This document shows, one piece after another, positions 48,119-63,119 of a stretch of 64,000 bases of DNA (within the stretch, counting starts at the first letter, position 1; each line of letters opens with the position of its first letter). The position numbers and the translations under genes were made by a program. The stretch comes from Epithemia pelagica (Eukaryota > Protista > Bacillariophyta), in assembly GCA_946965045.2 (NCBI GenBank), contig OX337236.1:1426001-1490000 (forward strand), in the 5' to 3' direction. Below the pieces are notes generated by a model that worked only from the letters and a program-made list of their open reading frames with translations, was not told the origin of the DNA and did not search any database.

Positions 48119-50158
48119 TCAGTATGAGTAGTCTTGAATTTCAATAACGTCTGCATTTTGAATTGTGTCTTCAAAGCCCTCTTGGATCTCCTCGCACAAC
48201 TCTTCCCTTGTTTGTACAGACTCTTTTAGCTGACATGCAACTATCAGTGTCTGAATGCCAAAACCAAGCTCATACACTCGATGTGATCTACACCATTGGA
48301 TGACAGAGTCCTGGGCCCAATGGGAGTAAATCTTTGTTGCCAGCACATTCCAATCATCCGCTGGCTCGTACGTCTTTATTTCGATCAACACTTTTGACCA
48401 AAGGGGAGCATCCTCCTCCTCCTCCTCGTACTCTTTGGAATCATTCTCCATTGCTGTTTCCTGAAGACGATCAGAGACAACATCTTCTTGTTTCGAAGGT
48501 AAGAGTTTGTTAATTTGGTCCAAGGTATCTTTAATCGCGTCATTCACTCTTCGAACCAAGTCCGACTCTTCGCCACGACAAATAGTGTATTGTTGACCTG
48601 CTTGTTGCAGCAAATCGACAGCATCCTTGAGCAATCTAGTGTCCTGCATCATGGAATGCGCACACTCCTCCATAGCCCAGCCTTTGGTGACAAAGTACGA
48701 AGGGAACAGGACTTCCGACAATTGCACTAGACGCTGATATGTAGCGACAACGTAGTTGCTTTCTCCACGTTCCAGGGATTGCATACAGCTTTTCCATTCG
48801 CGAACCGAGTCGAGTCTTCCATCCTCCGTGGGCGACAAACAACGCGCACATTGACAACAAAAGAACTTGTATCTTGTCAACGACTCGTTGCGCTCAGCTG
48901 TTCCTTCTTCAAGGTTGGAGACATAGCTAATGCAACATTCTTGATTCATAGATATATGTTCCACAGCTCTGAAATCCAGTACAGCGTCACGATCGTTCCA
49001 GCCATGTGTGACGTTTTCGAGACAAGAATGATTGAACATACTTGGCATCCCAGGAAACAGTCCCACCGCACCGGAGCCAAGACCAATGGCATTGATGTTG
49101 ACTGATAGAAACAAATGAACAAGAGTTTGTACAGAGATATCATCGGATACCAATTTGTTCTCCAGCATCCATTCTGACAGACGCGTCGCTTGGTCTAAAA
49201 AAGAGTTTTCCTCGACAGCACTCTCTGTCTTGAAGTCATCTAGGTGATCTTGCAGGTCCATCATCTTCAACCACTCCGTACGATTATTTTCTTTCAATAG
49301 GACAGCTCTGTACACCAGCTGCGCCTTGAAGCATGGTACGCCAATGGCTGTACTTTGGTCCAAGAGACTCTGTAGATTGGAGCATTCCATTTCGTGCAAG
49401 CTTTTAAACTCGCGTTGGCAGGCACGAGAGCAATAGGACCAAACTTGGCACTTGGGACACATCAATGTTAACTCTCGAACAGTATCACGCGTGGTCTTTC
49501 GACCGCAGTGAAAACAGACAGAATCAGAAGCTAAATCGTAGACAGCCATACAATAAGGGCGTGTGGAAACGAGTATCTGACCAGGTTGTGCTGGCTCTTT
49601 ATTTTTCCACACAACGAATCTTCCACGAGAATCACCTTCGGTTGGAACAGAAACATGTAGGCTTCTGTCCTCCAAAGCCTTTCTCATCGCTCCAATATTC
49701 TTTTCAACGGAGTCCATCTCATCTTTCTTCTTGCTCCTGTTACTCTGAATTGCCGCTAAGACCTCTGGTCGTTGGTAGTATCCATATTTCCATCTCAGTG
49801 CTTCCATGAGCGTCCATTGGTGCCGTGAAACCAGGCCATGATTGTCTTGATCCGTCAAAGGCTTGAGTAAATTACGTCGTATCAAGGTCAACAGACGATA
49901 ATCAGGAACTTTGGGTAGTTTCCTCAAGAGCGGCTGCCAGCCTCGTACTTGCTCGAACACATCAAAGTCAGTTGGTTGCCAGTTATCCAGAGCAACATTG
50001 GACAAGACAGGATGGGTTCGGAAGCGTTGCCAAAGATCCTCGTCAATCGGATGCAAATCATAAAAGAATTCTTGTGGAGAAAATGTCCCTTCTACAATGG
50101 CACTGTGGTATCGATCGAACCATTCGTGTGCAGCTTCAGCCCAATCCGATGTATTCAT
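48119..50158 (-). CDS. SET/MYND (SMYD-like) lysine methyltransferase with a C-terminal EF1-beta-like domain
   Basis: Split SET (RGRFVV..GQILV...FNHSC..ECCISYV), MYND (CFHC..CPKC..YCSRACQ..H..EC), post-SET CQCARC; the C-terminal ~90 aa resemble the EF1B exchange domain. Confidence 0.85.
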   Translation of the reverse strand: MNTSDWAEAAHEWFDRYHSAIVEGTFSPQEFFYDLHPIDEDLWQRFRTHPVLSNVALDNWQPTDFDVFEQVRGWQPLLRKLPKVPDYRLLTLIRRNLLKPLTDQDNHGLVSRHQWTLMEALRWKYGYYQRPEVLAAIQSNRSKKKDEMDSVEKNIGAMRKALEDRSLHVSVPTEGDSRGRFVVWKNKEPAQPGQILVSTRPYCMAVYDLASDSVCFHCGRKTTRDTVRELTLMCPKCQVWSYCSRACQREFKSLHEMECSNLQSLLDQSTAIGVPCFKAQLVYRAVLLKENNRTEWLKMMDLQDHLDDFKTESAVEENSFLDQATRLSEWMLENKLVSDDISVQTLVHLFLSVNINAIGLGSGAVGLFPGMPSMFNHSCLENVTHGWNDRDAVLDFRAVEHISMNQECCISYVSNLEEGTAERNESLTRYKFFCCQCARCLSPTEDGRLDSVREWKSCMQSLERGESNYVVATYQRLVQLSEVLFPSYFVTKGWAMEECAHSMMQDTRLLKDAVDLLQQAGQQYTICRGEESDLVRRVNDAIKDTLDQINKLLPSKQEDVVSDRLQETAMENDSKEYEEEEEDAPLWSKVLIEIKTYEPADDWNVLATKIYSHWAQDSVIQWCRSHRVYELGFGIQTLIVACQLKESVQTREELCEEIQEGFEDTIQNADVIEIQDYSY

Positions 50159-50405
50159 AGCAACGCAGGGACACCAACCGCACGTCGATGTTCCGTGATC
50201 TGGGATATCTAAGATCCACAACACGCGACATTGGACATCAAAAGATGATCGTGTCGCTCATTGTACTCCCCCAAACGGTGTTGATTAGGGTTCAGGTTTC
50301 AGGTTAAAGTGGGGACTACTCTGGAATCATGATGTCTTGCTAGCAAGCACTTAGAGGTAGGTAATCGTCTATTCCTACTTCCTACTCCTAATGAATGTGA
50401 TTGAA

Positions 50406-50441
50406 ACCGCCAAGGCGGTAAAGGACGGCTGAGTTCAGTAT
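50406..50441 (-). other. Helentron 3' end: subterminal inverted repeat plus GC-rich stem-loop
   Basis: Element strand reads ATACTGAACTCAG-CCGTCCTTT-ACCGC CTTG GCGGT-TT. Confidence 0.8.
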
Positions 50442-50502
50442 CAGTAGTACAGTGGACAGGACTATTCTATTTATCCTTGGCAGCACTTACTAGAAATGAA
50501 AG

Positions 50503-53500
50503 TTAATTATGTCTTTCAACGAGCTGAACCGCGGGTGGCGGACGTTTAGTTGTCCGGAAATGTACATGAAACTCTTTACATTCAGCAGACATTCCACGAC
50601 ATTTGTCGGCTATAAGTGGTTTTGCAAGGAAAAGGCCTTTGAGCTGGCAAACTCTCGACAAACAAACATAGTTCCAATTGCCCGTGTAGTCCCAGTTCGA
50701 TATGTAAAGAAATTCGATTGATCTCCCTTGTAGCTTATGAACAGTCCTTGCATTGGACACATTGAGAGGAAGCTGCGTCATTTTCATCGTTTTCCTCACT
50801 CGTTTCATGCCGAACATGGGGAGTGGGAACTACACTTGTTGAGTAACAGTCTGAGGCTTCAAAAGAACAACATGGTTCTGGTTTCCATCAACCACTTTCA
50901 CCTTGATTCCCTCGATTTGAGTGACCTTAAGACTCCAAACATAATATCCATCAATCAATATTTTCTCCAAATCAGTTAATGTCACCCCTTGCTTAAGGAG
51001 AACGCCATTGAATTCACACATGGCTCCATTAGCAATACATGACTCAACGTCTTTGTTTTCATTGATACACAACGGTCTTCCATAATACAGTTTCAAAAGT
51101 GGATCATATCTCTTGTTGTCTCGTCCTTGCCAGTGACCCTCACCACAGGTGGCATACAGGATATCTTCACTTGCCTTGTTGAAATCAACATAGTCATTTC
51201 TTGTTCCCGCTTTTTTCCACTTCAAGTTGGACGCTTTGATACAGATTGTGTGCATGGGAGGGTCAACATTAGGATCTTTTGAATGGGTATTTTCCAGATG
51301 TTTAGCAAAAATGGCATCATTGATTGCTGCTCGATCAAGATTAGTTTTCGTTGCATAAACCACATTTGGAGGAATGTCTTTCTCTGTTGGTCCATGTTTA
51401 GATCCAACAACACGAGTATTGATTGTCGCCACATCACCATTGCTTGGTCCCTCATCTCGAAATGTCTCAAGAATTGTCCCCCATGGTGGATCAAGGCGAA
51501 ACCTGTGATTTGTCTTAAGTTCAAGGAATGTGTGTACCCAGTCATACCATTTCACGAAGTCCTTAAAAAGGAATAATGGTTGGGCTTTGACTGGTTTCAG
51601 TTGTGTGAAATCACCTGCAAAGACAAGAGCAATTCCACCAAAGGCTGCATCCGGCTGCAATATTTGTCGCAATTTGTGATCAAGAGTATCAACGACTTCT
51701 TTTGAGGCAAATGAAATTTCATCAACGATCAACAGATAAGCATTTTTCCATTGCTCTGGTTCCTTGGTAATTGCTCTGTTTAGTGCACAAGCCATAGCAG
51801 TTGTTTCTCCGTTTATCCCAACTGCTGCAGCACCTGTAAGAGCAGTAACGACAATAGTTCTCTTGTCATACCTGATGTGGAGGTTGTAGCACAAATTTTT
51901 GGCGTATTGTACAATTGTTTTGATAACGTGGCTTTTCCCAGACCCCCCTGCTCCTGATAGAAATGCAATGAATTGGTTTCCCCTGTTGACGTTTTGCAAT
52001 GTCTTTTGAATGTTGTCAAGTTTCCGTCGTTTCCGTGTAGGCATTGCTTCAGGATTTGTATTTGAATTTCGGTTTGCCTCATCATGCAAACACACTATAA
52101 AAGCAGAAATGATTGCTTCGAATGCATAGCGCTGATCCATATCGTCTCTGAAATGGTGGGCTGCATATTCGCGTATATTTTTCAATGTCCCAATCGCTTT
52201 GATATCTTGCTGTCCATCACCAGCTGTAATTCTCTCTGTCCGTGAAATTGCCAATTCATGAAGAGCTGCTTTGGTTACATGATGAGAAAAGGACGTTTCA
52301 GGGGTGGACTCAAGACCCACATGTGAAGCTGAGGTGTCTTCCAGGAGCTGTAGAACATTTCCTGTAAAGCCGTTGTCTTCATCTATAACAGGTGTAACAA
52401 TGTTTTGAATGCCACAGTTTGACGTTCCACATTTGCGAATGATACATGATGGAATCTGATAAATGTTGGTTGGCGACCTCAAGTCAAGTCCTTTCTCATT
52501 CATGTCATTGACCGTCTCAATAAGCTCCTCAAAGGCACTGTCAAAATCTTTGTGAAGAGCACTATCCTCATCATTTTCATTATCATATTTGTCATGGACA
52601 CAACAGTTGTCAGTTGGCTTTTGTGTTTCTTTTTCCAGAGGATCCACTGGTCTTCCAGAATTTAGACTGTTCCGACAATCTTGAATGTTAGCAAGAATTT
52701 GCCGATGCTCAGCTGTGATCATTCCACTCTGAAGTGCTGCTTGGAAACATTTAACAAATGAACCATCCTTTGTCAAATCTCCTGGAAAGGATCTGAATGA
52801 ATGGAACAAGATGTTTGCTTTTTTTGCATAAAGTTCCATGTAATGATGTTCCTCGTGCAAGATATCATCCGGCATTTCTTCTGTTTCAATGTTTCGATTC
52901 CCAAAATATTTGGTGTCAACAAAATCTTTGTAAGTCACAAGTGATATCTTTGTATGTTTTGCGGCTGTTACACCAAGATGGTCTTTTGAAGGGTGTTCCT
53001 TGATCCATTCCAAGCTTTTTGATGTTTTCCTGGTCACTGTGAAGTTGGACAGAAAATCATACGAACAAACATCTTCAAGTTCTTCTGGGCAGAACAAGTA
53101 ATTTGCAACATCTGACGTCAGAAAGGTGTTTCCATCAATCAAATCAAGGGACAAATCTTGCAAGGTTGCTTTTTCAAAATTTTTGAGATTCACATATGCA
53201 AAATCATGTGAATAACGAAACCTTGAGCCATTATTTTGCACCAAGTAAGAAGCCATCGGTGCACTGCATATATGTGCAGAAGTGGACAGCAACATTGCCC
53301 CAATTAATGCCCTCATTCCAGAAGTTTCACGGTCTTGCTCAACCGTCTCAATTTCTGTCGAATTGGTAGTCTGCTCAAGTTCAAGCAATCTTTCCCGCAT
53401 TTTTTGTATCATTTGTTTAGCTGCATTTGTAAACAGTGAACTGTCTTCTTCTTGAGTATTCTTAGAAATGTAACATGTCATATACATGACACTTCCTCCG

Positions 53501-56313
53501 TCAACAGCTGTCACAACATTAGTATTGCAACCAAAAATCTGGCTTGCATGACAATTGTGAATATTGACAAATGCATCATGGTGTTTTCGATTTGCTTCCA
53601 GTGTGAACAATTGTCTGGATTGATCATTGCCTTTCCAATCAAACCACTTTGTTGAATCTTCTGAAAACTTCAACTCTGTTTTTTCACACTCTGCACACGG
53701 AATATGCATACGACACTCGTCTCCTTTCTTGAAACAAGAAATAGCATGTTTTGAGCGATGCAAATTGAGTAATACTGTCAGAACAAAGGTGCCATCAGTT
53801 GTCATTCTCTTGGGATGTAAGATCTGCTGACGCATCAGGAACAATTCCATTGAATTTGTGAGTGGAACATTGAAGGATGAAGCTTGTGCCATTGGGTCAT
53901 TCTGTGGTTGTTGTTCTTGAAAAGCCATGGCTGGGAGAATGTTTTTCAATCTGGAAAGAACAAGAGCTTCACTTGTCATTGCTGTGTTGCAGTTTGCGCA
54001 TCTGACAATTGATTTCCCACCAAGGGATGTTACACCAATCTTTGTTCGCAAATTCCGAATGTCTTGTTTGGAACATGGGTGGAAGGCACGTGAGACACAA
54101 GCATCATTTACACAAGGCGGAATAGTTTCGCCATGCATATGTGTGCTCATGACCTTTGATGCATAGTCAACTAAGAGCTTCGAAAAGTGTTCTCTTGTTG
54201 CCTGATTGGCAAGTCCTTTCAATAACTTTGACCACTTTAACAACCATAAGAGAAAATGATCATGAAGTGTTTTTCTTCCTTGCTCCTCAACTGTATCACA
54301 CCACGCAAGCAAATCACCAAATAAACCTTCATCAATTTTGTTCATTCTCTTTTTCATATCCCAGCCAAGGAGATGCTCAATCGTTATTGCAATCACATTT
54401 TCAAAGTCAATACCACACATTCCCGGGTGAATCTGTCTAATGCGAGCACAGTCAAGGATGAATTCTTGTTGATCCAAAGTTGAAGTTGTAGCTGGGTTAG
54501 GTGGAATTGCTTCACCAACCTTTTTGTTCACCATTACACGCAGTCTGAAATTTACGGCATCTTCTGGTGTAATTGTAAACATCACATTTGGCAAACCAAA
54601 TTTTGCAATCATTGCTAGCATATTTTGTCGTGCTTTTCTGGCAGCTCCTGCAGTGTGTCCCATAGAAGATGCGACAGCTTTCATCTTTCTCAAAAACTGG
54701 TCACTAGGACCTGATCCCTGGGCATTTTCAAGATGGCGCTTGATTGCATCTTGAATCTGTTTGTCAGTGATTGTAGCAAATGATTCTGCTTGTGTATCAC
54801 TGGTTCGCAAATATGAATTTGAGACCATTCTTTGACGCTCAAACATATTGTGCGCGACACATACAAAATCAGCATGGTGAAAAAACTTGCTTGAGTGTCG
54901 CATCAGATGCCCAAAGTAACTCATTCTAACATGGGGATTTCCATCTTTATCATAGGCACCAATCCCATAGGGAAACTGTAAAGGAAATGCCTTCAGAAGA
55001 TTAGAACCTTGTTAGTCTTTCAACAAGGTTTTCGAAGGTCTTGAAATCAATGTTGCATCTTTATTGTCATGGTCTGCCAAAAGACGATCAAGCGTCATTT
55101 GCTTGAAATCATCCTGGGAGGAGAACCCTCCATTTTTCTGCTGAGGTTCATCAGAATCAGGGAAGACCGCCGTGATTTCAAAAACTTGCTCAACATTGGA
55201 CGTTGAGGCAGGTGCGTCATCACTTTTGTCAATGACAATTGGTTTTACAAGATGTTCTGGTGGCAAATCAAAGTCATGGTACAAATGATTGTGTTGTTTC
55301 AACCATTGTAGCGCTTTTTTGACCAAATTCCATCGAACGTTTGTGCGCTGACGAGTCAAAGCTTTCTGTGTAGGTGTGAAAGGACCTGTTAAAACAACAG
55401 CAATTTGAGGCAGAAGAGGCGATTCATTGCTATTAAGTGGCGGTTGATCTGTGTCATCATTTTCATTCATAATGTCGCTGATGCCACTATTATTGTCTTG
55501 AATGTCATTTCCAACATCACTGACATTGTCATCATCACTATCATCCATGTCGTGATCAAAAAGTTCTGTCCATGGAGCAGGAATGTCTTGGCCAGTATGT
55601 TCACTTTGTTGTTCGCCATGATTAGGAAGTGCACTGTCAGCTTGTCCTGTTGCTGACAGACACCAATTTATAACCCCATTGACAGCTTTGAGGTCATTGT
55701 AATACAAGGAGTGCCAACCCTTAATTGATTTATGTGATCCTGCCGTGAATGAAAAAACGTGTTTGTTTGTCCTCGCCGGCGAAATGAGTGCGAGTTCGAC
55801 CTCATTCAGAGTTTGCAAGCAAAGAGGTGTAGGACCAATCATAAAGCCATTGATGATAGCATTTTTGGGAATTTTATCAGGGTCACTATTCCTTTTTTTC
55901 ATGTAAATGATGCAATGGTAACATTCTGAGCAACATCCAAATCCTTCAGATTGTCCCTTTTTGATTGCATAAGAGGACGGTGAAAGAACCAAGCTTTGCA
56001 GCGGACGATACTTTCTGTTGGAATGAGAGGAATTGTAACACGTTTGTGTGTAATGTTTCTTGATCTGTTTCTGGCTCTCTAGTCCGGTACCATCGTGTGA
56101 AAAGTCAAGATTAGACTTCATGAATTTTGGTTTTATTTTCTCATGAAGAATATCATCAATCTTCAGGCATTTCTCTGACCCAACCTTGATGAATTGATCA
56201 CAGACACAACATACTTTTGGGAAAAACAAGTCTCCTTTCTTAGTCAAAAGAGAATCCCGACTTGCCACTGCTCTGGCTATTCTTTTTTGGATCGAGGTGT
56301 CTCTAGCTAACAT
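50503..56313 (-). pseudogene. Helitron-type Rep (HUH)-PIF1 helicase ORF, ~1936 codons, with two in-frame stops (55014-55012 TAA, 50832-50830 TAG)
   Basis: The three track ORFs share one frame. Rep motifs FPLQFPYGIG, FGLPNVMFTITPED, VEEQGRKTLHDH and YMTCYISK; helicase motifs GAGGSGKS, IVDEISF, FAGDFTQLKPV, NHRF, TVHKLQG and YVCLSRV. No endonuclease domain. Confidence 0.93.
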
Positions 56314-56443
56314 TTCTTGGTAATGCAGATCTTGCTGGTTACAACTGGTGACAACTTAGGCCAAATGAGTATTGTGAGAAGAGAAGTCAAAGGTAAGTGA
56401 CACAGTCAGTAGATAGGTCTTCTACCTAACTGTCACGAACCAA

Positions 56444-57311
56444 CTGACAACTACATGTGGTTTCTGTGCTAAGGCAGCTATGCATACTCTTTGGAACATG
56501 TGGTTCGTGTATTAACAAGCTCCAAAATTTTTCTGCGACCTAACTGGCGATACGAGATTCAGAGGAATGTCTACCAACTGCAACTTCCGGTAATGGACTT
56601 AAAACGTAGGTAATCCTTCTACTACTCAGAGTATCCTCACGATATAACATTTTAAATTTTCACACAGTAATACCTCTTATATGATCATACTAGGTATAGA
56701 TTAATTTAATATGAGGAAAACATCCAGAGTCACGGATGTCGGAGGATTTGGTAGATGTCGGATGATGTCGGATGATGTCGGAGGATGTCGGATGATGTCG
56801 GATGATGTCGGATGTTTTTATCGCCAAAAGAATATGCACTCTCCAGCAGATGGGATTCTTCACGAGAAATCACAAGGTTACAAGTCACTGATTGACGGTA
56901 GGCCCATCAACTGAAGGAGCACCGCTGGATTTTGAGGCAAACCATGTTTGCGCGCGAGCCCGAAACGACATCAAACGACATCAAACAACATCAAACAACA
57001 TCAAACGACATACAAACGACATACCAACGACATACCTTTCGACATTCCCGTTTGTTCCATACTAGAGAATGGTAAATCATATTCTATGGTATCATAATAC
57101 GTACTTTGTATTAATATCGATCCTTTGTTTTGGTTTCGTCCGTTGGGTATTGGGAGAGAATATGCGACTCACGTGTAGTTACCGGAAGTTGCTGACCTGC
57201 ATATGGGTTCTGTGCTAACGGAGCTATGCATACTCTCTGTGACATGTGGTTTGTGTATTAGGCTGTGAAATTGTTCTGCGACCAAACTGTTGATCCGAGA
57301 TTCCAAGGAAT
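56444..57311. repeat. Symmetric repeat cassette upstream of RepHel: direct repeat, 14-bp IR, two opposed 10-bp arrays, 14-bp IR, direct repeat
   Basis: DR ~56444-56568 and ~57192-57311; IR GCAACTTCCGGTAA 56580-56593/57179-57192; GATGTCGGAT array 56754-56813; AAACGACATC array 56963-57047. Confidence 0.88.
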
Positions 57312-57529
57312 TAGTTTCATTGGATCACTTTTGAATGATCGCAATATTTCCTTACTTATCATTTGCGCTCAATTCATTCGATTGCATGGAATCTGAACTT
57401 TGTGGCACCACCACCATAGCATTAGGTTAATTTGAATGTGCTGCAGAAAAGAACGAAATGATGTAGGAAGTTGCTGTGTTTGTTCGACTTCTGTTATAGT
57501 TTTGTCGAAACCTTTGCGAAGAAAGCATA

Positions 57530-58018
57530 ATGCCCCGTCATCGTGTAGGTCTCCGTTATCGTGCCGGGTTTTTCCCTCATCCAGGCATGCCTGGTTATCC
57601 GGTACGGACTATCATCGAGGCAGGCTGTGCGTTTAAACCTGTTGATTGTATCGTTTATTTCAGTGAGCATGATTTTTACATCCGTCTGTGTGTCATCCAA
57701 AAGTATTCCAAGGCAATTGATGTGTTGCGATGTATCGCAGAAAGGCTTCGATCACGACTCTGTGATATTCGACTTTGTCAGGAAAATGGTAAACGTATTG
57801 CTATGAAGGCTTACGTCTATGACAACGATGATGATCTCATTGACGGGGTTGTTATGGCAATTGGAATGGTGATTCAGATGAGAATGATGATTCAGATGAG
57901 AATGATGATTCAGAAGAAGAGGAACATGAATACAAGGTTAATGAAGAGAGCGACGAAGGGAGCGACGAGCAAGACGAGGAGGATGATGTGGAATATATGT
58001 TATGAACGAGATATGTAA
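57530..58018 (+). pseudogene. Small cargo ORF whose Asp/Glu-rich tail lies in a shifted frame
   Basis: ~105 ordinary codons; from ~57871 a different frame reads DSDENDDSDENDDSEEEEHE..., including an 18-bp tandem repeat. Confidence 0.4.
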
Positions 58019-58220
58019 GTATCTTGGTTATTTGTAATACCAAGAGAGTAAAACTAATAGTCTATTGATTGTCTAGCGCAAGCACACATACGGTTTGGAC
58101 TCATGTTATAATGGCAGACGCATGGACGCGCAGTCTTAGTATAGTTGCTAGTGTTGTGGAATCGATGAACCAAACGAGAACCATACGTTCTTGTCTCATC
58201 CATGATTTAAAGCTAGTAAC

Positions 58221-59075
58221 GGATCATGGCGGAGTGGGTATTGTCGTGTGACTACTAGGGAATAGCATCCACAGTCTGTTTGGCGGGGTTCGTGGTGGCG
58301 GTTGGTTTGCGATGGCCTCGGCTCCTGGATCGAGAGGAGCTTTCCTCTTACGTACCAGAGGAATTCCCTACTCCGTTTTTGCGTTGCCCCACCGACAATA
58401 CTGATGATATTGACAATGACAAGACTCTGTTTTTTTTAAGAGTGGTGCCAAACCAAGGAAGACATTTCTTGGACGATTTCTGCTTGGCCACTCCTTTCGT
58501 GTCTTTCTCGTGTTGTCGTCTTGGTGAATTGGGGCGGTGTTGGTTTTGGCTTGGAGGATCATGGTGGAGTGGGTATTGTCGTGTGATTACAGCCAATATT
58601 CGTGGTGGCGGTTGGTTTGCAATGGCCCCGGCTGCCGGGTCGAGGGGAGCTTTCCTCTTTTGTATCAGAGGAACCTTTTTGCGTTGCCCCACCGACAATA
58701 CTGTTGATGTTGATAATGGCAAGACTGTGGACGATTGCGAGCATCCTTGGGACGAGGCAACCACTGTGGTAATCGTTGTGGAACCAGTGTGCCTCGTGAC
58801 GACGGACGACCAAAGACGGATTCATCCTCATTGCCATCCATTTAATCAAAGTCCAATTCATCTCAAGCCATCAGTTTCTGGTCCAAGTCCATTCGTTGCT
58901 TGGGAGGTGCATCCAAACTTGCTTGTTTTGTTCTGGTTTCTTTCAAGAGTAGTTCCAAACGACTGGTTGTGGTTCCTGTGGAAGATTGACGAAAAAATTT
59001 CTTGGACGGATTCTGCTTTGCCACTCGTTTCGTATCCTTCTCGTGTTGTCGTCTTGGTGAATTGGGCTGGTGCTA
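58221..59075. repeat. Diverged internal duplications in a decayed low-complexity ORF region
   Basis: ~58221-58430 resembles ~58556-58730; ~58488-58545 resembles ~59020-59075. Confidence 0.8.
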
Positions 59076-59579
59076 CTACTCGTCCTCCTCGTTGGCGTTA
59101 GGATAGGCTTGTACCAAAATGCCAATCCAAATGAGCCAAAATGCGTCCATGCGGTTGGATTCCGTACAAACTCATGAATCGTAGAATGCTTCACGGCCGT
59201 TCCTTCACCGTTGTTCGGTAGGAGTGGATACTTCCGAACTAAAGTTCCGCCTCTGTTGTGCTCACCAAATTTACGATAAAGAGAAGCGCCTCCTTACACG
59301 AACGAAAGAAATGCAACGAACGTTCGCCATGGGAGCACTTTTTGCGCGCCCATGATGTTGGTCGTCGTTGGGTGTTGGGTGTGATCGTTGGCTACGTGAT
59401 TGGGCACTTGCTAAATAGAAGAGAAAAGTAGGGTAGAGTATGAATCAAAAAGACAAAACCGTGTCACCGGCCGGCCCAGTGGAATCAAACATCAGCAGAG
59501 CTCACAGCAAGGACTTCCACTCTACCAGCGGGGATACGTCTATGGCCATGAACCCCAAACATGGCGAATCTTAACTTTG

Positions 59580-59670
59580 TGCTGAAGTGGGGGGAATCGA
59601 ACCCCTGACCTGTTCGATCAAGTGTGGATCTAAGACCCGAACCACTATCTCACCCAAGGTGCACTACACG
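59580..59670 (-). tRNA. tRNA-like sequence (pseudo-tRNA or tRNA-derived); anticodon uncertain, best reading Lys(CTT) with a 12-nt intron
   Basis: Clear B box/T arm AGGTC-AGGGG-TTCGATT-CCCCC; anticodon-like stem TTCGG/TCGAA; acceptor TGTAGTG/CACTTCA pairs 6 of 7; D arm non-canonical. Confidence 0.45.
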
Positions 59671-60627
59671 CTGGGTTTTTTTGTAATATTAAGATCCAAA
59701 GTGCACTAAAATCGTACTCCTACCTAGTTCTTGCTAGTAGGAGCTCTATTGTGCCTAACATAGAGGCACTACCTGCGTGCACCAATTGAAACCTTAACCC
59801 TAATGATACTATTCCATAGTGCTGACCAGCAGTTTTCTCCAACCTGTTGCGGTGTATAACCAACCACCCACATCTGGATGTGGTTCTGGATGTGATGCCG
59901 CATACAAGGCGGCCGAATCATCCAGTCGTTGCATGAAATTGTCGTGGACGTCATCTGGATTGCTCCTGGGAGGAGGAGCATAATCATTGTTGTTGTCGGT
60001 TGATGGGCCCTCGTTTCGTTCACAATCCCTCCAACAAGATGGAGTGCTCTGATTTCCAACGATTGGTATCTCTGTGTTGCTGTGCAGTCGCTCTCTCGAT
60101 CTCTTGGTCGAACAGAAGTCAACCAACCTCTGACTGAGCTATCGACGTCTCTCGTATTCGTGTGCAAAGTCCAACAGCCAACAGCCATCACACAAGATCC
60201 TTGTCTGTCCTTGTTCACGCTTTTCCTGCACCGGCGGTGTCAAAGTTGTTGTCAAACGTCGAACCGCCTCTCTTGCCATAAATCTTTATCTTCCAAGATC
60301 CCACTATTATCATCACCATCATGTTCAAGGCCTTTTTGCTGCACAAAACTCGACCGATGATTGATCCATTCCAAAGCAGAACTGACACAACAAATTTCGT
60401 TTCTCCGAGTTGGCCAAGGGAAACAAACCAGACATGTGCACGGTGCACTTTCCTCATTGTGATCATCCTCGTGCTTACAAACGAGATCATCCCGACAAAA
60501 AGGTGACCAATGGAGTATTTTCTTGTCCAGAAGCCGTCGAAATTTTATTCCTTCTCCCTTTGCCCTCATTGTGCGAGCCATGGTAAATTCTGGGGAAGGG
60601 CGTGATTGGGCTCATTACCAGAGTGCA

Positions 60628-61340
60628 AGATGCTCATATCCATCGACGAGAGTAGTTACGATCGTGTGCGTCTACAGAGCCTGCTTTCATTGGCGGGAAA
60701 GTGATACTCCTATGTGCATCTGAATCTTAGAATGTAGAGAGCCCGCCAACAAGAAAGAGTACTCTGAGACCATAGACAAGAGCCAAAACAAGTAAGAGTA
60801 GTATCGGTCTGTTGAGTCCTAGTTCGAAAGCGGAAGTTCCCTTAATAGAGGAAATTTCTACTCCTATATCCATTTGAATCTTAGCATGTAGAGAGCCCGC
60901 CAACAAGATGGACTTCTCTGATTTCCATACACAAGAGGCAAACAGATGCTCATATCCATCGACGAGAGTAGTTACGATCGTGTGCGTCTGCGGAGCCTGC
61001 TTTCATTGGCGGGAAAGTGATACTCCTATGTGCATCTGAATCTTAGAATGTAGAGAGCCCGCCAACAAGAAAGAGTACTTTGAGACCATAGACAAGAGGG
61101 AAAACAAGTAAGAGTAGTATCGGTCTGTTGAGTCCTAGTTTGAAAGCGGAAGATCCCTTAATAGAGGATTTTTCTACTCCTATATCCATTTGAATCTTAG
61201 CATGTAGAGAGCCCGCCAACAAGATGGAGTTCTCTGATTTCCATACACAAGAGGCAAACCAGTGAGAGTATTGGTCTGTTGAGTGCTGCTTCCAAGGCCA
61301 AACATCCCGTAATAGAGGAAATTTATACTCCCATGTGCAT
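60628..61340. repeat. Higher-order tandem repeat: two near-identical 316-bp units (60628-60943, 60944-61259), each a dimer of ~154/162-bp monomers, plus a partial copy
   Basis: TACTCCTA recurs at 60705, 60859, 61021 and 61175; the block TGAATCTTAG.ATGTAGAGAGCCCGCCAACAAGA recurs four times. Confidence 0.93.
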
Positions 61341-61520
61341 TTGAATTACAAATAGCGATGGGAGTATACCATGAAAACATTTTTCTCGGTTCTTGAACGG
61401 TTCCAATTGGAGAAGTGTTGAGGATCGAGAAAACACGATTTTCTCGATGCAGCCTCATCTCCTCAAGCCAAGTCCAACAATCAACTCATATTTCCTTCCT
61501 CGACAAACAACATCCGCATC

Positions 61521-62328
61521 ATGACTCCACCAGCAAAAAAGGCAAGTTTGATTGTTGCGTCGTTCTATCACTACATGGCATTCATCCATGCTCACCTTTC
61601 TTTTTTCTTCTCCTCACCAGGAAACAATCAAGAAGTTCAAGTTCACGGCAACGAAGAAGAAAGGTGTTGCTCCTTCTCCGAGTAGATCGAAGCCCAGGGT
61701 CTCTGAGATCCATTCGGAACGTTGTGGCCCTAACTCACAGTTTATTGTTGCTTACATGAAGCTCGCAGGGACCAAAACAGAGCGGTCGGGATACATGAAT
61801 CCTGTATTTGATCTGATTAAAGAAAAGGAAAAGTGCCTTTTTGATGAGTTTGATGTGCGAATTCAAAAACTGTATCGTCGTCTCTCACCTGAGAAGGATG
61901 AACCGATGATGAATGGCAACCCGGACAAGTCCGGAACCGAATACCCCTGGCCGTGCGTTGTTGGATTCTGTGACGACGCTGACAATGACACAAAGAAAAA
62001 GACTCTGACCAAAAATTTGTGTAAGACCATTGCCGAGGTGATGGAGAAGAATGACAAAGAAAACGGATACAATCGCACTTACAGCTACAACACTCCTGAC
62101 TTGGATCACACCGGCAATATTCCTCGCCCTTTGGATAATCTGTTTCAAGATGAAGAAGTCAATGCTCTTGTTCAAAACTACTTCGAACTCGGTGATGACA
62201 ATGATCTGTTCACCTATCTTGGTGGCGAAGACGATGGTGTGGCAGACCAGGCTTTTTCGCGTGATGAATACGGCATGTACTCCAGACTCCAGAAGTGCAG
62301 TGAATCGCTGGAAATACCCGACTGGTAG
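61521..62328 (+). CDS. Intact unknown cargo gene (~242 aa); exons 61521-61541 and 61621-62328, GC-AG intron
   Basis: ATG at 61521, donor AAG|GCAAGT, polypyrimidine tract plus CAG at 61620; frame preserved; basic N-terminus and globular-looking remainder. Confidence 0.7.
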
Positions 62329-62976
62329 GCTCCAAGACAACAAAGTCGACGAGAAGGAGTCCGAAGAAACGACCCCTGAGAATTGAGCGATTGTGATATG
62401 TGTACTGAAATACAATATGAGTGCCAATCGAGAGATATAAGGGCTTCTGCTTTTATCGTATACCAATATGCTATTATCAATACCACATGCATCCTGGTCA
62501 GCAGAACGAACGAAGAAAAACAAAATTCATAATATATGCTTTCCTAGTCAATTTATAATTCTTTGTTGCTGTATGATGAGAATATGAATTTAACTCTGCC
62601 GTTGTAGCGATTCATGCCCGTTATCGAACACAGCAATTCTCTCTAACGTCTTGCTACCTGTTCCTACGAGCTTTCAAACAAAAAGTCTTGTTTCAGTCAT
62701 TCCAGAACGGTTGGGCGTCTTACATTACTACTAGAGATTCGTCAAGGGTAAGTCCCCACTCACATTTTACGCGGTTGGAGGTGCACCTCCAAATCATACC
62801 ATGACTGACCATTAAAATATTCATTGCTATATCATTGCCATATATATTTAACCGTTTCATCAACCGCCATGTTTGCTCAATTGTACTTTTTACTCTAGTG
62901 TCCGTCCGTTTTCGGAACAGCTGGTCTTTCTGGAAATTCCCACCCCAGACCCCAAGCCTTCCGGCCCACCCGTCCC

Positions 62977-62998
62977 GTTCATACTGAACTCAGACGAA
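62977..62998 (-). other. Helentron 5' end: subterminal inverted repeat with overlapping hairpin
   Basis: Element strand reads TT-CGT-CTGAGTTCAGTAT-GAAC. Confidence 0.75.
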
Positions 62999-63119
62999 CA
63001 ATCCACCTCGCGCGTCGTTTCTCTTGTAAAGCAGACTGTAAGGCTGAGATTGCTCTATTGTTTATTCTTCTATTCTAAATCTGGGACATGATTCGGGTAT
63101 GCATCAGGTGAGGGCAAGG

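Follow-up and report, generated by a model that had tools for sequence, protein, structure and literature searches.

The window analysed in this study is a 64-kb stretch of the Epithemia pelagica genome (C9:1426001-1490000 of a 60.5-Mb eukaryotic assembly with 23 contigs; all copy searches reported below cover that genome). Between a sigma-factor gene and a SET/MYND gene it holds a 12,598-bp element that we assign to the Helitron2-type (HLE2) transposons. The element contains a gene for a RepHel transposase, two accessory genes on the opposite strand (the open reading frames, ORFs, ORF-X and ORF-Y), internal repeats and a nested miniature inverted-repeat transposable element (MITE). It had been outlined before in an initial annotation made from the sequence alone, which described it as a transposon carrying extensive 5' cargo.

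Transposase, termini and copies of the element

The following features concern the element as a whole, its transposase and its ends:

50401-62998, minus strand: complete Helitron2-type element, 12,598 bp; similarity lost sharply at both ends in 20 + 20 copies
50406-50419, minus strand: 3' terminal hairpin ACCGCCTTGGCGGT, 5 nt before the 3' end (...TTTCAA-3'), exact in 31 of 33 copies
50426-50441, minus strand: 3' asymmetric (subterminal) inverted repeat, ending 25 nt before the 3' end, immediately upstream of the hairpin
50830-56313, minus strand: RepHel gene, one frame of 1,827 codons, with DUF6570, HUH Rep (Helitron_like_N) and PIF1-like helicase domains (Pfam)
51931-51954, minus strand: helicase Walker A motif (GAGGSGKS), invariant G991, G994, G996 and K997, matching PIF1 and PIF1 structures in the PDB
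53470-53484, minus strand: catalytic tyrosine pair Y481-x3-Y485, invariant columns in 20 homologs
54256-54288, minus strand: HUH motif EEQGRKTLHDH, E213-H223 invariant in 20 homologs
62380-62998, minus strand: 5' terminal module, ~619 bp, kept in nearly all family members, non-autonomous ones included
62972-62998, minus strand: 5' terminus TTCGTCTGAGTTCAGTATGAACGGGACGG, containing the 5' inverted repeat at 62981-62996

The RepHel frame is broken by a TAA codon at 55012-55014; the ORFs 55012-56313 and 50830-54924 lie in the same frame with only this codon between them, and in a second copy of the element, C4a (C4:639628-652210), the codon reads TAT. Across 20 homologs, the HUH motif, which is the Rep motif pointed out in the initial annotation, Y481 and Y485, and the Walker A and Walker B motifs show no variation, and the window copy has all of them intact. 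Pfam searches of the 1,364-amino-acid (aa) ORF and of 53 homologs found no apurinic/apyrimidinic (AP; Exo_endo_phos) endonuclease domain, and just 430 bp lie between the RepHel stop codon and the element's 3' end. DUF6570, which is almost exclusive to HLE2 according to HELIANO (PMC11417382), occurs in almost every RepHel relative longer than ~1,600 aa. As evidenced by phmmer, the similarity of RepHel to Helraiser, an HLE1 transposase, is weak and limited to the helicase (E = 2e-7), with the Rep domain unmatched. Among named proteins, the closest relatives come from the diatom Nitzschia inconspicua (44-54% identity), where they are called 'PIF1-like helicase'. The genome itself encodes at least three further RepHel families (~70%, 51% and 36% identity), and the 51% family comprises at least seven copies, some of them with uninterrupted frames of ~1,890 aa. 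A protein labelled 'AAA family ATPase [Fusibacter sp.]' from a metagenome-assembled genome is 47% identical to the RepHel helicase; it probably represents DNA of a eukaryote that ended up in a bacterial bin.

The window contains the 13-mer CTGAGTTCAGTAT exactly two times, once at 50429-50441 on the plus strand and once at 62981-62993 on the minus strand, with an expectation of 0 from shuffled sequences. Both positions of this exact inverted match, 12.5 kb apart and with one of them beside the 3' stem-loop, are as initially described, and the match extends to 16 nt with one mismatch. Note that the 13-mer is weak evidence by itself, because chance alone would give about 1.5 exact inverted ones among all position pairs in 14.5 kb (an estimate; the repeat comparison of this stretch listed 127 inverted pairs), and that it is the other copies that settle the matter. 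Between the 13-mer and the left end lies the palindrome ACCGCCAAGGCGGT (50406-50419), the 3' hairpin with a GC-rich stem of 5-6 bp (ACCGCC/GGCGGT). In the two variants among the 33 3' termini the changes are confined to hairpin loop bases, and the subterminal repeat is conserved in the 33 copies. The 5' repeat begins 2-5 nt from the element end and folds with the bases downstream of it into a hairpin of its own (-8.6 kcal/mol, z = -3.3). In element orientation the ends read 5'-TTCGTCTGAGTTCAGTATGAACGGGACGG ... ATACTGAACTCAGCCGTCCTTTACCGCCTTGGCGGTTTCAA-3', the start being TTCGTCTGAGTTCAGTAT.... The 51% and 70% sister families have homologous 5' ends in which the inner stem GTTCA/TGAAC is conserved, and the 5' hairpin of the 51% family shows a single pair of changes that compensate each other, T5>A and A26>T.

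In the 20 + 20 aligned copies, similarity stops sharply at TTGAAACCGCC... (50401) and ...CAGACGAA (62998), and the plus-strand junctions in the window are flank/TTGAAACCGCCAAGGCGGT... at the left end and ...ACTCAGACGAA/flank at the right end. As the similarity of the copies stops at the same base, TTGAA lies inside the element and its left end is at 50401, 3 nt further out than the position 50404 assigned before. The register is uncertain by 1 nt (alternative 50400-62997), with a length of 12,598 bp in either case. A 141-nt probe over the left end located 34 places in the genome and a right-end probe at least 40; a pattern for the 3' terminus matched 33 copies (31 exactly) and one for the 5' terminus 39, and reversed control patterns of both termini had no match in the genome. 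Pairing the 33 and 39 matches by their coordinates yielded at least 27 pairs of termini on the same contig and strand and in the right order, 3.7-18.9 kb apart and located on 13 contigs. An all-against-all comparison of 38 flanks showed those of different copies to be mutually unrelated beyond 1-2 conserved bases.

Aligned to positions 50400-63000 of the window, C4a forms a single block of 12,602 columns with 99.3% identity, in which the 89 differing columns are evenly spread across RepHel and the 5' half. The 5' region is also found, with few indels, in three more RepHel-bearing copies (98-99.5% identity):

C17:310584-323910
C4:2146039-2157681 (C4b)
C11:690224-702794

The stretch from 56.3 to 63.0 kb does move as a unit with RepHel, as the initial annotation had proposed, and the further copies and derivatives with both ends for which it had suggested a search are indeed present. 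Shorter members are internal-deletion derivatives of 3.7-8 kb that have kept both termini, for example on C3 (5.8 kb), C13 (4.4 kb), C16 (6.8 kb) and C5 (7.5, 8.1 and 4.2 kb). Another subfamily has in common with the element only the ~619-bp 5' module and the final 47 nt, which are the sole 3' sequence common to the family and the short-type subfamilies. Judged by this conservation, the two parts likely delimit the cis-acting ends. A 14-kb member at C2:5374502-5388480, which has no more than the 5' 619 bp and the 3' 47 nt in common with the family, possesses a second, truncated 5' end (E11-290) and a gag-pol frame of the copia type, 1,898 aa long (rve, RVT_2); a copia-type retroelement may travel inside this Helitron. 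The doubled 5' end recurs in two other C2 elements.

We put the probability that the element is a real, recently mobile, multi-copy, endonuclease-free Helitron2-type transposon lodged between the sigma-factor and SET/MYND genes at about 0.93. Its structure is the one by which Helitron2 elements were defined (Bao & Jurka 2013, PMC3627910; likewise PMC5148889) and which is referred to as the 'canonical HLE2 structure' (PMC11417382): a RepHel protein with HUH motif, two tyrosines and a PIF1-like superfamily 1 helicase, asymmetric repeats, and hairpins at both termini. The repeats should measure 8-16 nt, with the 5' one at the end and the 3' one 20-30 nt inside; here they match over 13 nt exactly or over 16 nt with one mismatch, and the 3' offset is 25 nt. 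The initial annotation had recognized this combination of subterminal inverted repeats, stem-loop and missing endonuclease correctly. A distance of 242 bp separates the element from the start codon of the SET/MYND gene (50158), upstream of which it lies, and one of 121 bp from the stop codon of the sigma-factor gene (63120), downstream of which it lies. Its removal would leave ~360 bp between these two codons, a spacer of the kind foreseen before, although longer than the ~300 bp given then. According to Pfam, the neighboring gene at 48119-50224 (minus strand) encodes a protein with MYND, SET and EF-1 guanine-nucleotide-exchange domains.

The 5' region and its accessory genes

Upstream of RepHel, the element contains the following features:

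56581-57191, no strand: nested MITE, 611 bp, with a perfect 13-bp terminal inverted repeat CAACTTCCGGTAA and a 3-bp target duplication CTG
57530-58018, plus strand (antisense to RepHel): ORF-Y, accessory gene 2, predicted ubiquitin/SUMO-fold domain and acidic tail
58221-59072, no strand: internal direct repeats, ~300-530 bp, with no conserved coding sequence and no tblastx match to the sister families
60627-61346, no strand: tandem repeat with 154-bp and 316-bp units, copy number different among copies
61654-62386, plus strand (antisense to RepHel): ORF-X, accessory gene 1, basic N-terminus and conserved core of ~210 aa

In the window copy of ORF-X, a 7-bp insertion near 62287-62293 throws the last ~30 codons out of frame. 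The gene is open in the C4a, C17 and C11 copies, and C4b retains only its 3' part. In the 70% family the homolog (54% identity) lies upstream of RepHel on the same strand as the transposase, in the 51% family (37% identity) it is also upstream but on the opposite strand, and almost all of these sister-family homologs are free of stop codons. The proportion of nonsynonymous differences (pN) is far below that of synonymous ones (pS), with a ratio of the corresponding rates (dN/dS) of 0.18 where computable. A profile search of 1.84 billion proteins returned 54 remote homologs of ORF-X; the genomic neighborhood was read on five contigs, and on four of them, from ocean metagenomes, the homolog adjoins a divergently oriented DUF6570/Helitron_like_N gene, the fifth being too short to tell. 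ORF-X did not match any Pfam family. An AlphaFold2 model based on 44 sequences reached a mean predicted local confidence (pLDDT) of 89.5 and a predicted template-modelling score (pTM) of 0.84, and Foldseek searches with it against PDB and BFVD returned nothing below 1e-3. A wide VIA search had a best Z of 4.9, with several KH domains at Z 3.4-4.9, below the chance level stated for the tool. The fold of ORF-X is confidently predicted, but the model has no convincing structural relative. In the C17 and C11 copies only, an insert of ~1 kb bordered by the inverted repeat GGAACAYCGCGAAATTGC is found at element position 617 (in C17 at 901-1945 of the analysed stretch), and the ORF-X frame continues into it.

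In C17 and C4b, ORF-Y is intact and encodes 280 aa, with a long acidic tail after a conserved domain of ~115 aa. A deletion of ~363 bp near 57850, common to the window copy and C4a, puts the tail out of frame, and what had been taken for one intact gene at 57530-58018 is a deletion-frameshifted copy of the 280-aa gene. Homologs are found in the 51% family (57-59% identity) and in the 70% family (28-34%), and dN/dS is ~0.22. In the AlphaFold2 model, residues 35-115 (pLDDT 76-87) adopt a beta-grasp fold that Foldseek superimposes on SUMO1/2 with a probability of 1.00, template-modelling (TM) scores of 0.75-0.84 (SUMO1 0.80) and a root-mean-square deviation of 2.0-2.5 Å. The VIA search gave Z values of 8.7-10.2, and its top 50 matches were all ubiquitin-like. 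There is no Gly-Gly motif after the fold, the domain continuing into an acidic tail of ~160 aa, and ORF-Y would therefore not be a classical modifier. The tail (window 57864-57914 and the C17 and C4b tails) is encoded by short tandem repeats that expand and contract, and its length varies among copies and among families.

Tandem and direct repeats occupy ~3.5 kb between ORF-X and ORF-Y. The ORFs at 58280-59101, 59769-60218 and 60252-60581 have no Pfam match and no conservation in the sister families, and we treat them as presumably non-coding. The 'repeat cassette' of the initial annotation exists, its identity being that of the nested MITE. It is missing at exactly this point from the C17, C4b and C11 copies, and at least 25 solo copies with 84-98% identity are found elsewhere in the genome. 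The MITE contains a pair of opposed 10-bp microsatellite arrays, GATGTCGGAT and AAACGACATC. Searches for tRNAs and Rfam families in the element, where a tRNA-like sequence had been suspected, found none, the only match being a 15-nt sub-threshold one to a tmRNA end at 59591-59605.

A parental host locus for the 5' half was not found, as the whole-genome DNA search gave Helitron copies and the MITE only. Its coding part comprises the two accessory genes, which are conserved in three Helitron2 families of the genome. What had been described as cargo is for the most part not DNA captured from the host; the 5' half is made up of the two accessory genes, internal repeats and the nested MITE. ORF-X and ORF-Y are part of the Helitron2 clade and are maintained there by selection, rather than being fresh captures from the host.

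The window copy and C4a share the MITE and the ORF-Y deletion and are otherwise 0.7% apart, each with private lesions: the RepHel TAA and the 7-bp insertion in ORF-X in the window copy, and two 1-bp deletions in RepHel in C4a. As the MITE and the ORF-Y deletion are common to both, the last transposition postdates those lesions. To judge by its reading frames, the window copy is dead in all three genes, and any later movement would need proteins in trans. ORF-Y would be either dispensable in cis or supplied in trans.

Target site and alternative explanations

Aligned in element orientation, the bases flanking the copies show a short consensus:

Position -2: T or A, 21 of 21 copies
Position -1: G or A, 21 of 21 copies
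Position +1: T, 20 of 20 copies
Position +2: T or C, 20 of 20 copies
Position +3: T, 13 of 20 copies

The profile is W-R/element/T-Y. No repeated flank bases were seen at the junctions of these 20-21 copies, and hence nothing that would suggest a target duplication; the Helitron2 pattern is insertion between T and T, or between T and T/C, with the target left unduplicated. Of the earlier statement that both ends abut TT, one half is correct, as the element starts with TT; its 3' end is followed by a host T and then by C or T. Empty sites were looked for in several places. As for other strains, suggested in the initial annotation, and other haplotypes, the only occurrence of the SET protein was on one contig of one ENA assembly, ERZ21939226, and the same holds for a gene flanking the C4 copy, without an empty allele for either. 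The all-against-all comparison of the 38 flanks revealed no paralogous repeat with an empty site at the junction, and the flank at C5:1720559 is unique in the genome search, with no empty counterpart. No rRNA was found in the flanks of the family of the 12.6-kb element.

The 51% sister family did provide an empty site, which for the 12.6-kb element serves only as an analogy. One of its copies sits as a clean insertion in a broken 28S gene (C8:1563205-1575831), the one occupied copy among 14 otherwise empty ones. Intact 28S copies read ...CTTCTTCTA/TCGACTAGAGG, and the occupied one reads ...CTTCTTCTA/TTCGACTGAG...GGGTACTG/TCGACTAGAGG. The empty site has a single T (A-T-C), which fits W-R-T-Y. 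By analogy, the 12.6-kb element would have one of two forms, TT...CAA with insertion at R^T or TC...CAAT with insertion at T^Y, and the latter register agrees with the published insertion of Helitron2 before 'T or C' (PMC5148889). On the plus strand of the window, the empty sequence is predicted to read ...AATGAATGTGA/CAATCCACC..., the junction having a single A; the one proposed initially was wrong, as TTGAA lies inside the element. There is a similarity between the 28S target, TCGACTAGAG, and the 5' end of the 51%-family element itself, T-TCGACTGAG. It may be fortuitous, or the target may imitate the site of 5' cleavage, as in IS200/IS605.

Whether only the RepHel half at 50.4-56.4 kb is a transposon, with host or unrelated DNA at 56.3-63.0 kb and a distant 13-mer that matches by chance, is a question raised by the near-chance frequency of inverted 13-mers among the 127 pairs listed and by the GC content, which is 44-49% in the 5' block versus 39-42% in RepHel. 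The C4a copy, however, is colinear and 99.3% identical over 12.6 kb within unrelated flanks, the block is common to three more RepHel copies, and the 39 copies of the 5' terminus all have one common end point. The initial annotation had allowed for copies that end near 56.4-57.3 kb; none does, and this stretch is the MITE that three copies lack. Its other counter-case, a 57-63 kb block at the orthologous locus without RepHel, was not encountered either. The full-length C4a copy, the copy boundaries and the shared 5' region refute this explanation, and its probability is practically nil. A spread of the copies by segmental duplication or gene conversion instead of transposition would be in keeping with the failure to find an empty site or a circular or tandem junction. 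It is hard to reconcile with at least 27 pairs of ends on 13 contigs whose flanks are alike in 1-2 bases only, with deletion derivatives of 3.7-8 kb that retain exactly both termini, and with the clean insertion of the sister family into one 28S copy, and we give it hardly any credence.

The class assignment and the nature of the accessory genes leave somewhat more room. A canonical Helitron (HLE1) would have the structure 5'-TC...hairpin...CTRR-3' between A and T, and a Helentron in the strict sense a C-terminal AP endonuclease. The element starts with 5'-TC in one register and its helicase weakly matches that of Helraiser, but its 3' end is ...GGCGGTTTCAA(T) rather than CTRR, it has asymmetric repeats, a 5' hairpin and DUF6570, phmmer left the Helraiser Rep domain unmatched, and the AP endonuclease domain is lacking, so that membership in either group is very improbable. 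ORF-X and ORF-Y, on the other hand, might be true cargo, i.e. recently captured host fragments that do nothing for the element. Capture of host genes is frequent in Helitrons, both ORFs are damaged in the window copy and yet its lineage still transposed, and C4b is without the 5' part of ORF-X. Against this stand their presence across three families with RepHel proteins of only 51-70% identity, with open frames in nearly all copies and a dN/dS of ~0.2, the ORF-X relatives adjoining DUF6570-RepHel genes on independent metagenome contigs, and the lack of any stand-alone host paralog in searches of the own genome. We consider a host origin of this kind improbable, though less so than the other alternatives.

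A number of observations weigh against a recently mobile Helitron2-type transposon, the reading that we prefer. None of the five RepHel-bearing copies examined has a complete RepHel frame, and no autonomous source was identified in this assembly. Membership in HLE2 is judged by the termini, DUF6570 and the absence of the endonuclease. The exact register (±1 nt) and the apparent lack of a target duplication rest on flank alignments and on one insertion of a sister family, a search for a head-to-tail junction of the element found none, and the model of ORF-Y was built on only six sequences.

Known relatives, mechanism and significance

With the Helitron2 group (PMC3627910, PMC11417382) the element shares 13-16-nt repeats, both hairpins, the 5' T, a host T after the 3' end and the arrangement of DUF6570, Rep and PIF1-like domains. 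It differs in its diatom-like host, in a 5' region of 6.7 kb and in two accessory genes that lack a Pfam family, and the one empty site of the sister family has a single T instead of TT. FoHeli1 and FoHeli2 from Fusarium oxysporum (PMC5148889) similarly have Helitron2-type ends, two hairpins, a 12-bp inverted repeat and recent, near-identical copies, and present the same ambiguity of a TC or TTC start; unlike the Epithemia element they are 5-6 kb long, end in ATTTT and insert after TNAT, and reports on them mention no gene resembling ORF-X or the ubiquitin-like gene. The Helentrons that contain VTD/OTU deubiquitinases (PMC9741609) belong to HLE2 as well and have a link to the ubiquitin system, but they carry a C-terminal AP endonuclease and protease domains inside RepHel, whereas the Epithemia element has a separate ubiquitin/SUMO-fold gene and no endonuclease. 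Their non-autonomous, DINE-1-like derivatives (PMC4067079) also contain internal tandem repeats. The Proto-Helentron of Phytophthora, an HLE2-reverse element (PMC11417382), is comparable in its stramenopile host, its DUF6570, its length and its extra genes, with the difference that the Epithemia element has the canonical HLE2 layout with the stem-loop at the 3' end. Extra genes known in Helitrons include RPA, OTU, UCH, VTD, HSP20 and others. In the open literature we found neither a described diatom Helitron2 family nor accessory genes with a ubiquitin fold or resembling ORF-X, and it is plausible that the family of the 12.6-kb element is undescribed.

For its transposition we propose a series of steps that are inferred from Helitron/HUH biology and not from data on the 12.6-kb element. 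From 5' to 3', the mobile unit consists of the 5' terminus with its hairpin, antisense ORF-X, the repeats, antisense ORF-Y, the MITE, RepHel, the 3' repeat, the 3' hairpin and TTTCAA-3'. RepHel would nick one strand at the 5' end, the helicase would peel off the nicked strand from 5' to 3', and the 3' inverted repeat together with the hairpin would signal the second cut. The resulting single strand, probably circular, would then be joined into a W-R-T-Y target without target duplication. A single cleavage motif could account for all three junctions, namely R^T-Y with a TT start of the element and T^Y with a TC start.

Our best guess for ORF-X and ORF-Y is that they act as cofactors or interfere with the host via the ubiquitin/SUMO system. 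A tentative extension, which we regard as possible but rather doubtful, is that one clade of Helitron2 elements lacking the endonuclease, from diatoms and ocean metagenomes, forms a three-gene system. Such a system would need RepHel, ORF-X and an acidic-tailed SUMO/ubiquitin-fold protein that is not conjugatable, the latter two acting as transposition cofactors or as decoys against host ubiquitin/SUMO control. If true, the accessory proteins would parallel the deubiquitinases carried by Helentrons.

The element provides a full-length Helitron2 reference for a diatom-like genome, in a group for which Helitrons have so far only been listed by repeat maskers, and it allows ~30 elements, 4-19 kb in length, to be masked correctly in the 60-Mb genome. 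Its minimal cis parts are likely defined by the ~620-bp 5' module and the 47-nt 3' end. This type of transposase is accompanied by two genes across families, and Pfam-based surveys such as HELIANO would miss both of them. The gene with the predicted ubiquitin/SUMO fold adds to the link of HLE2 with ubiquitin that is known from the Helentron deubiquitinases (PMC9741609).

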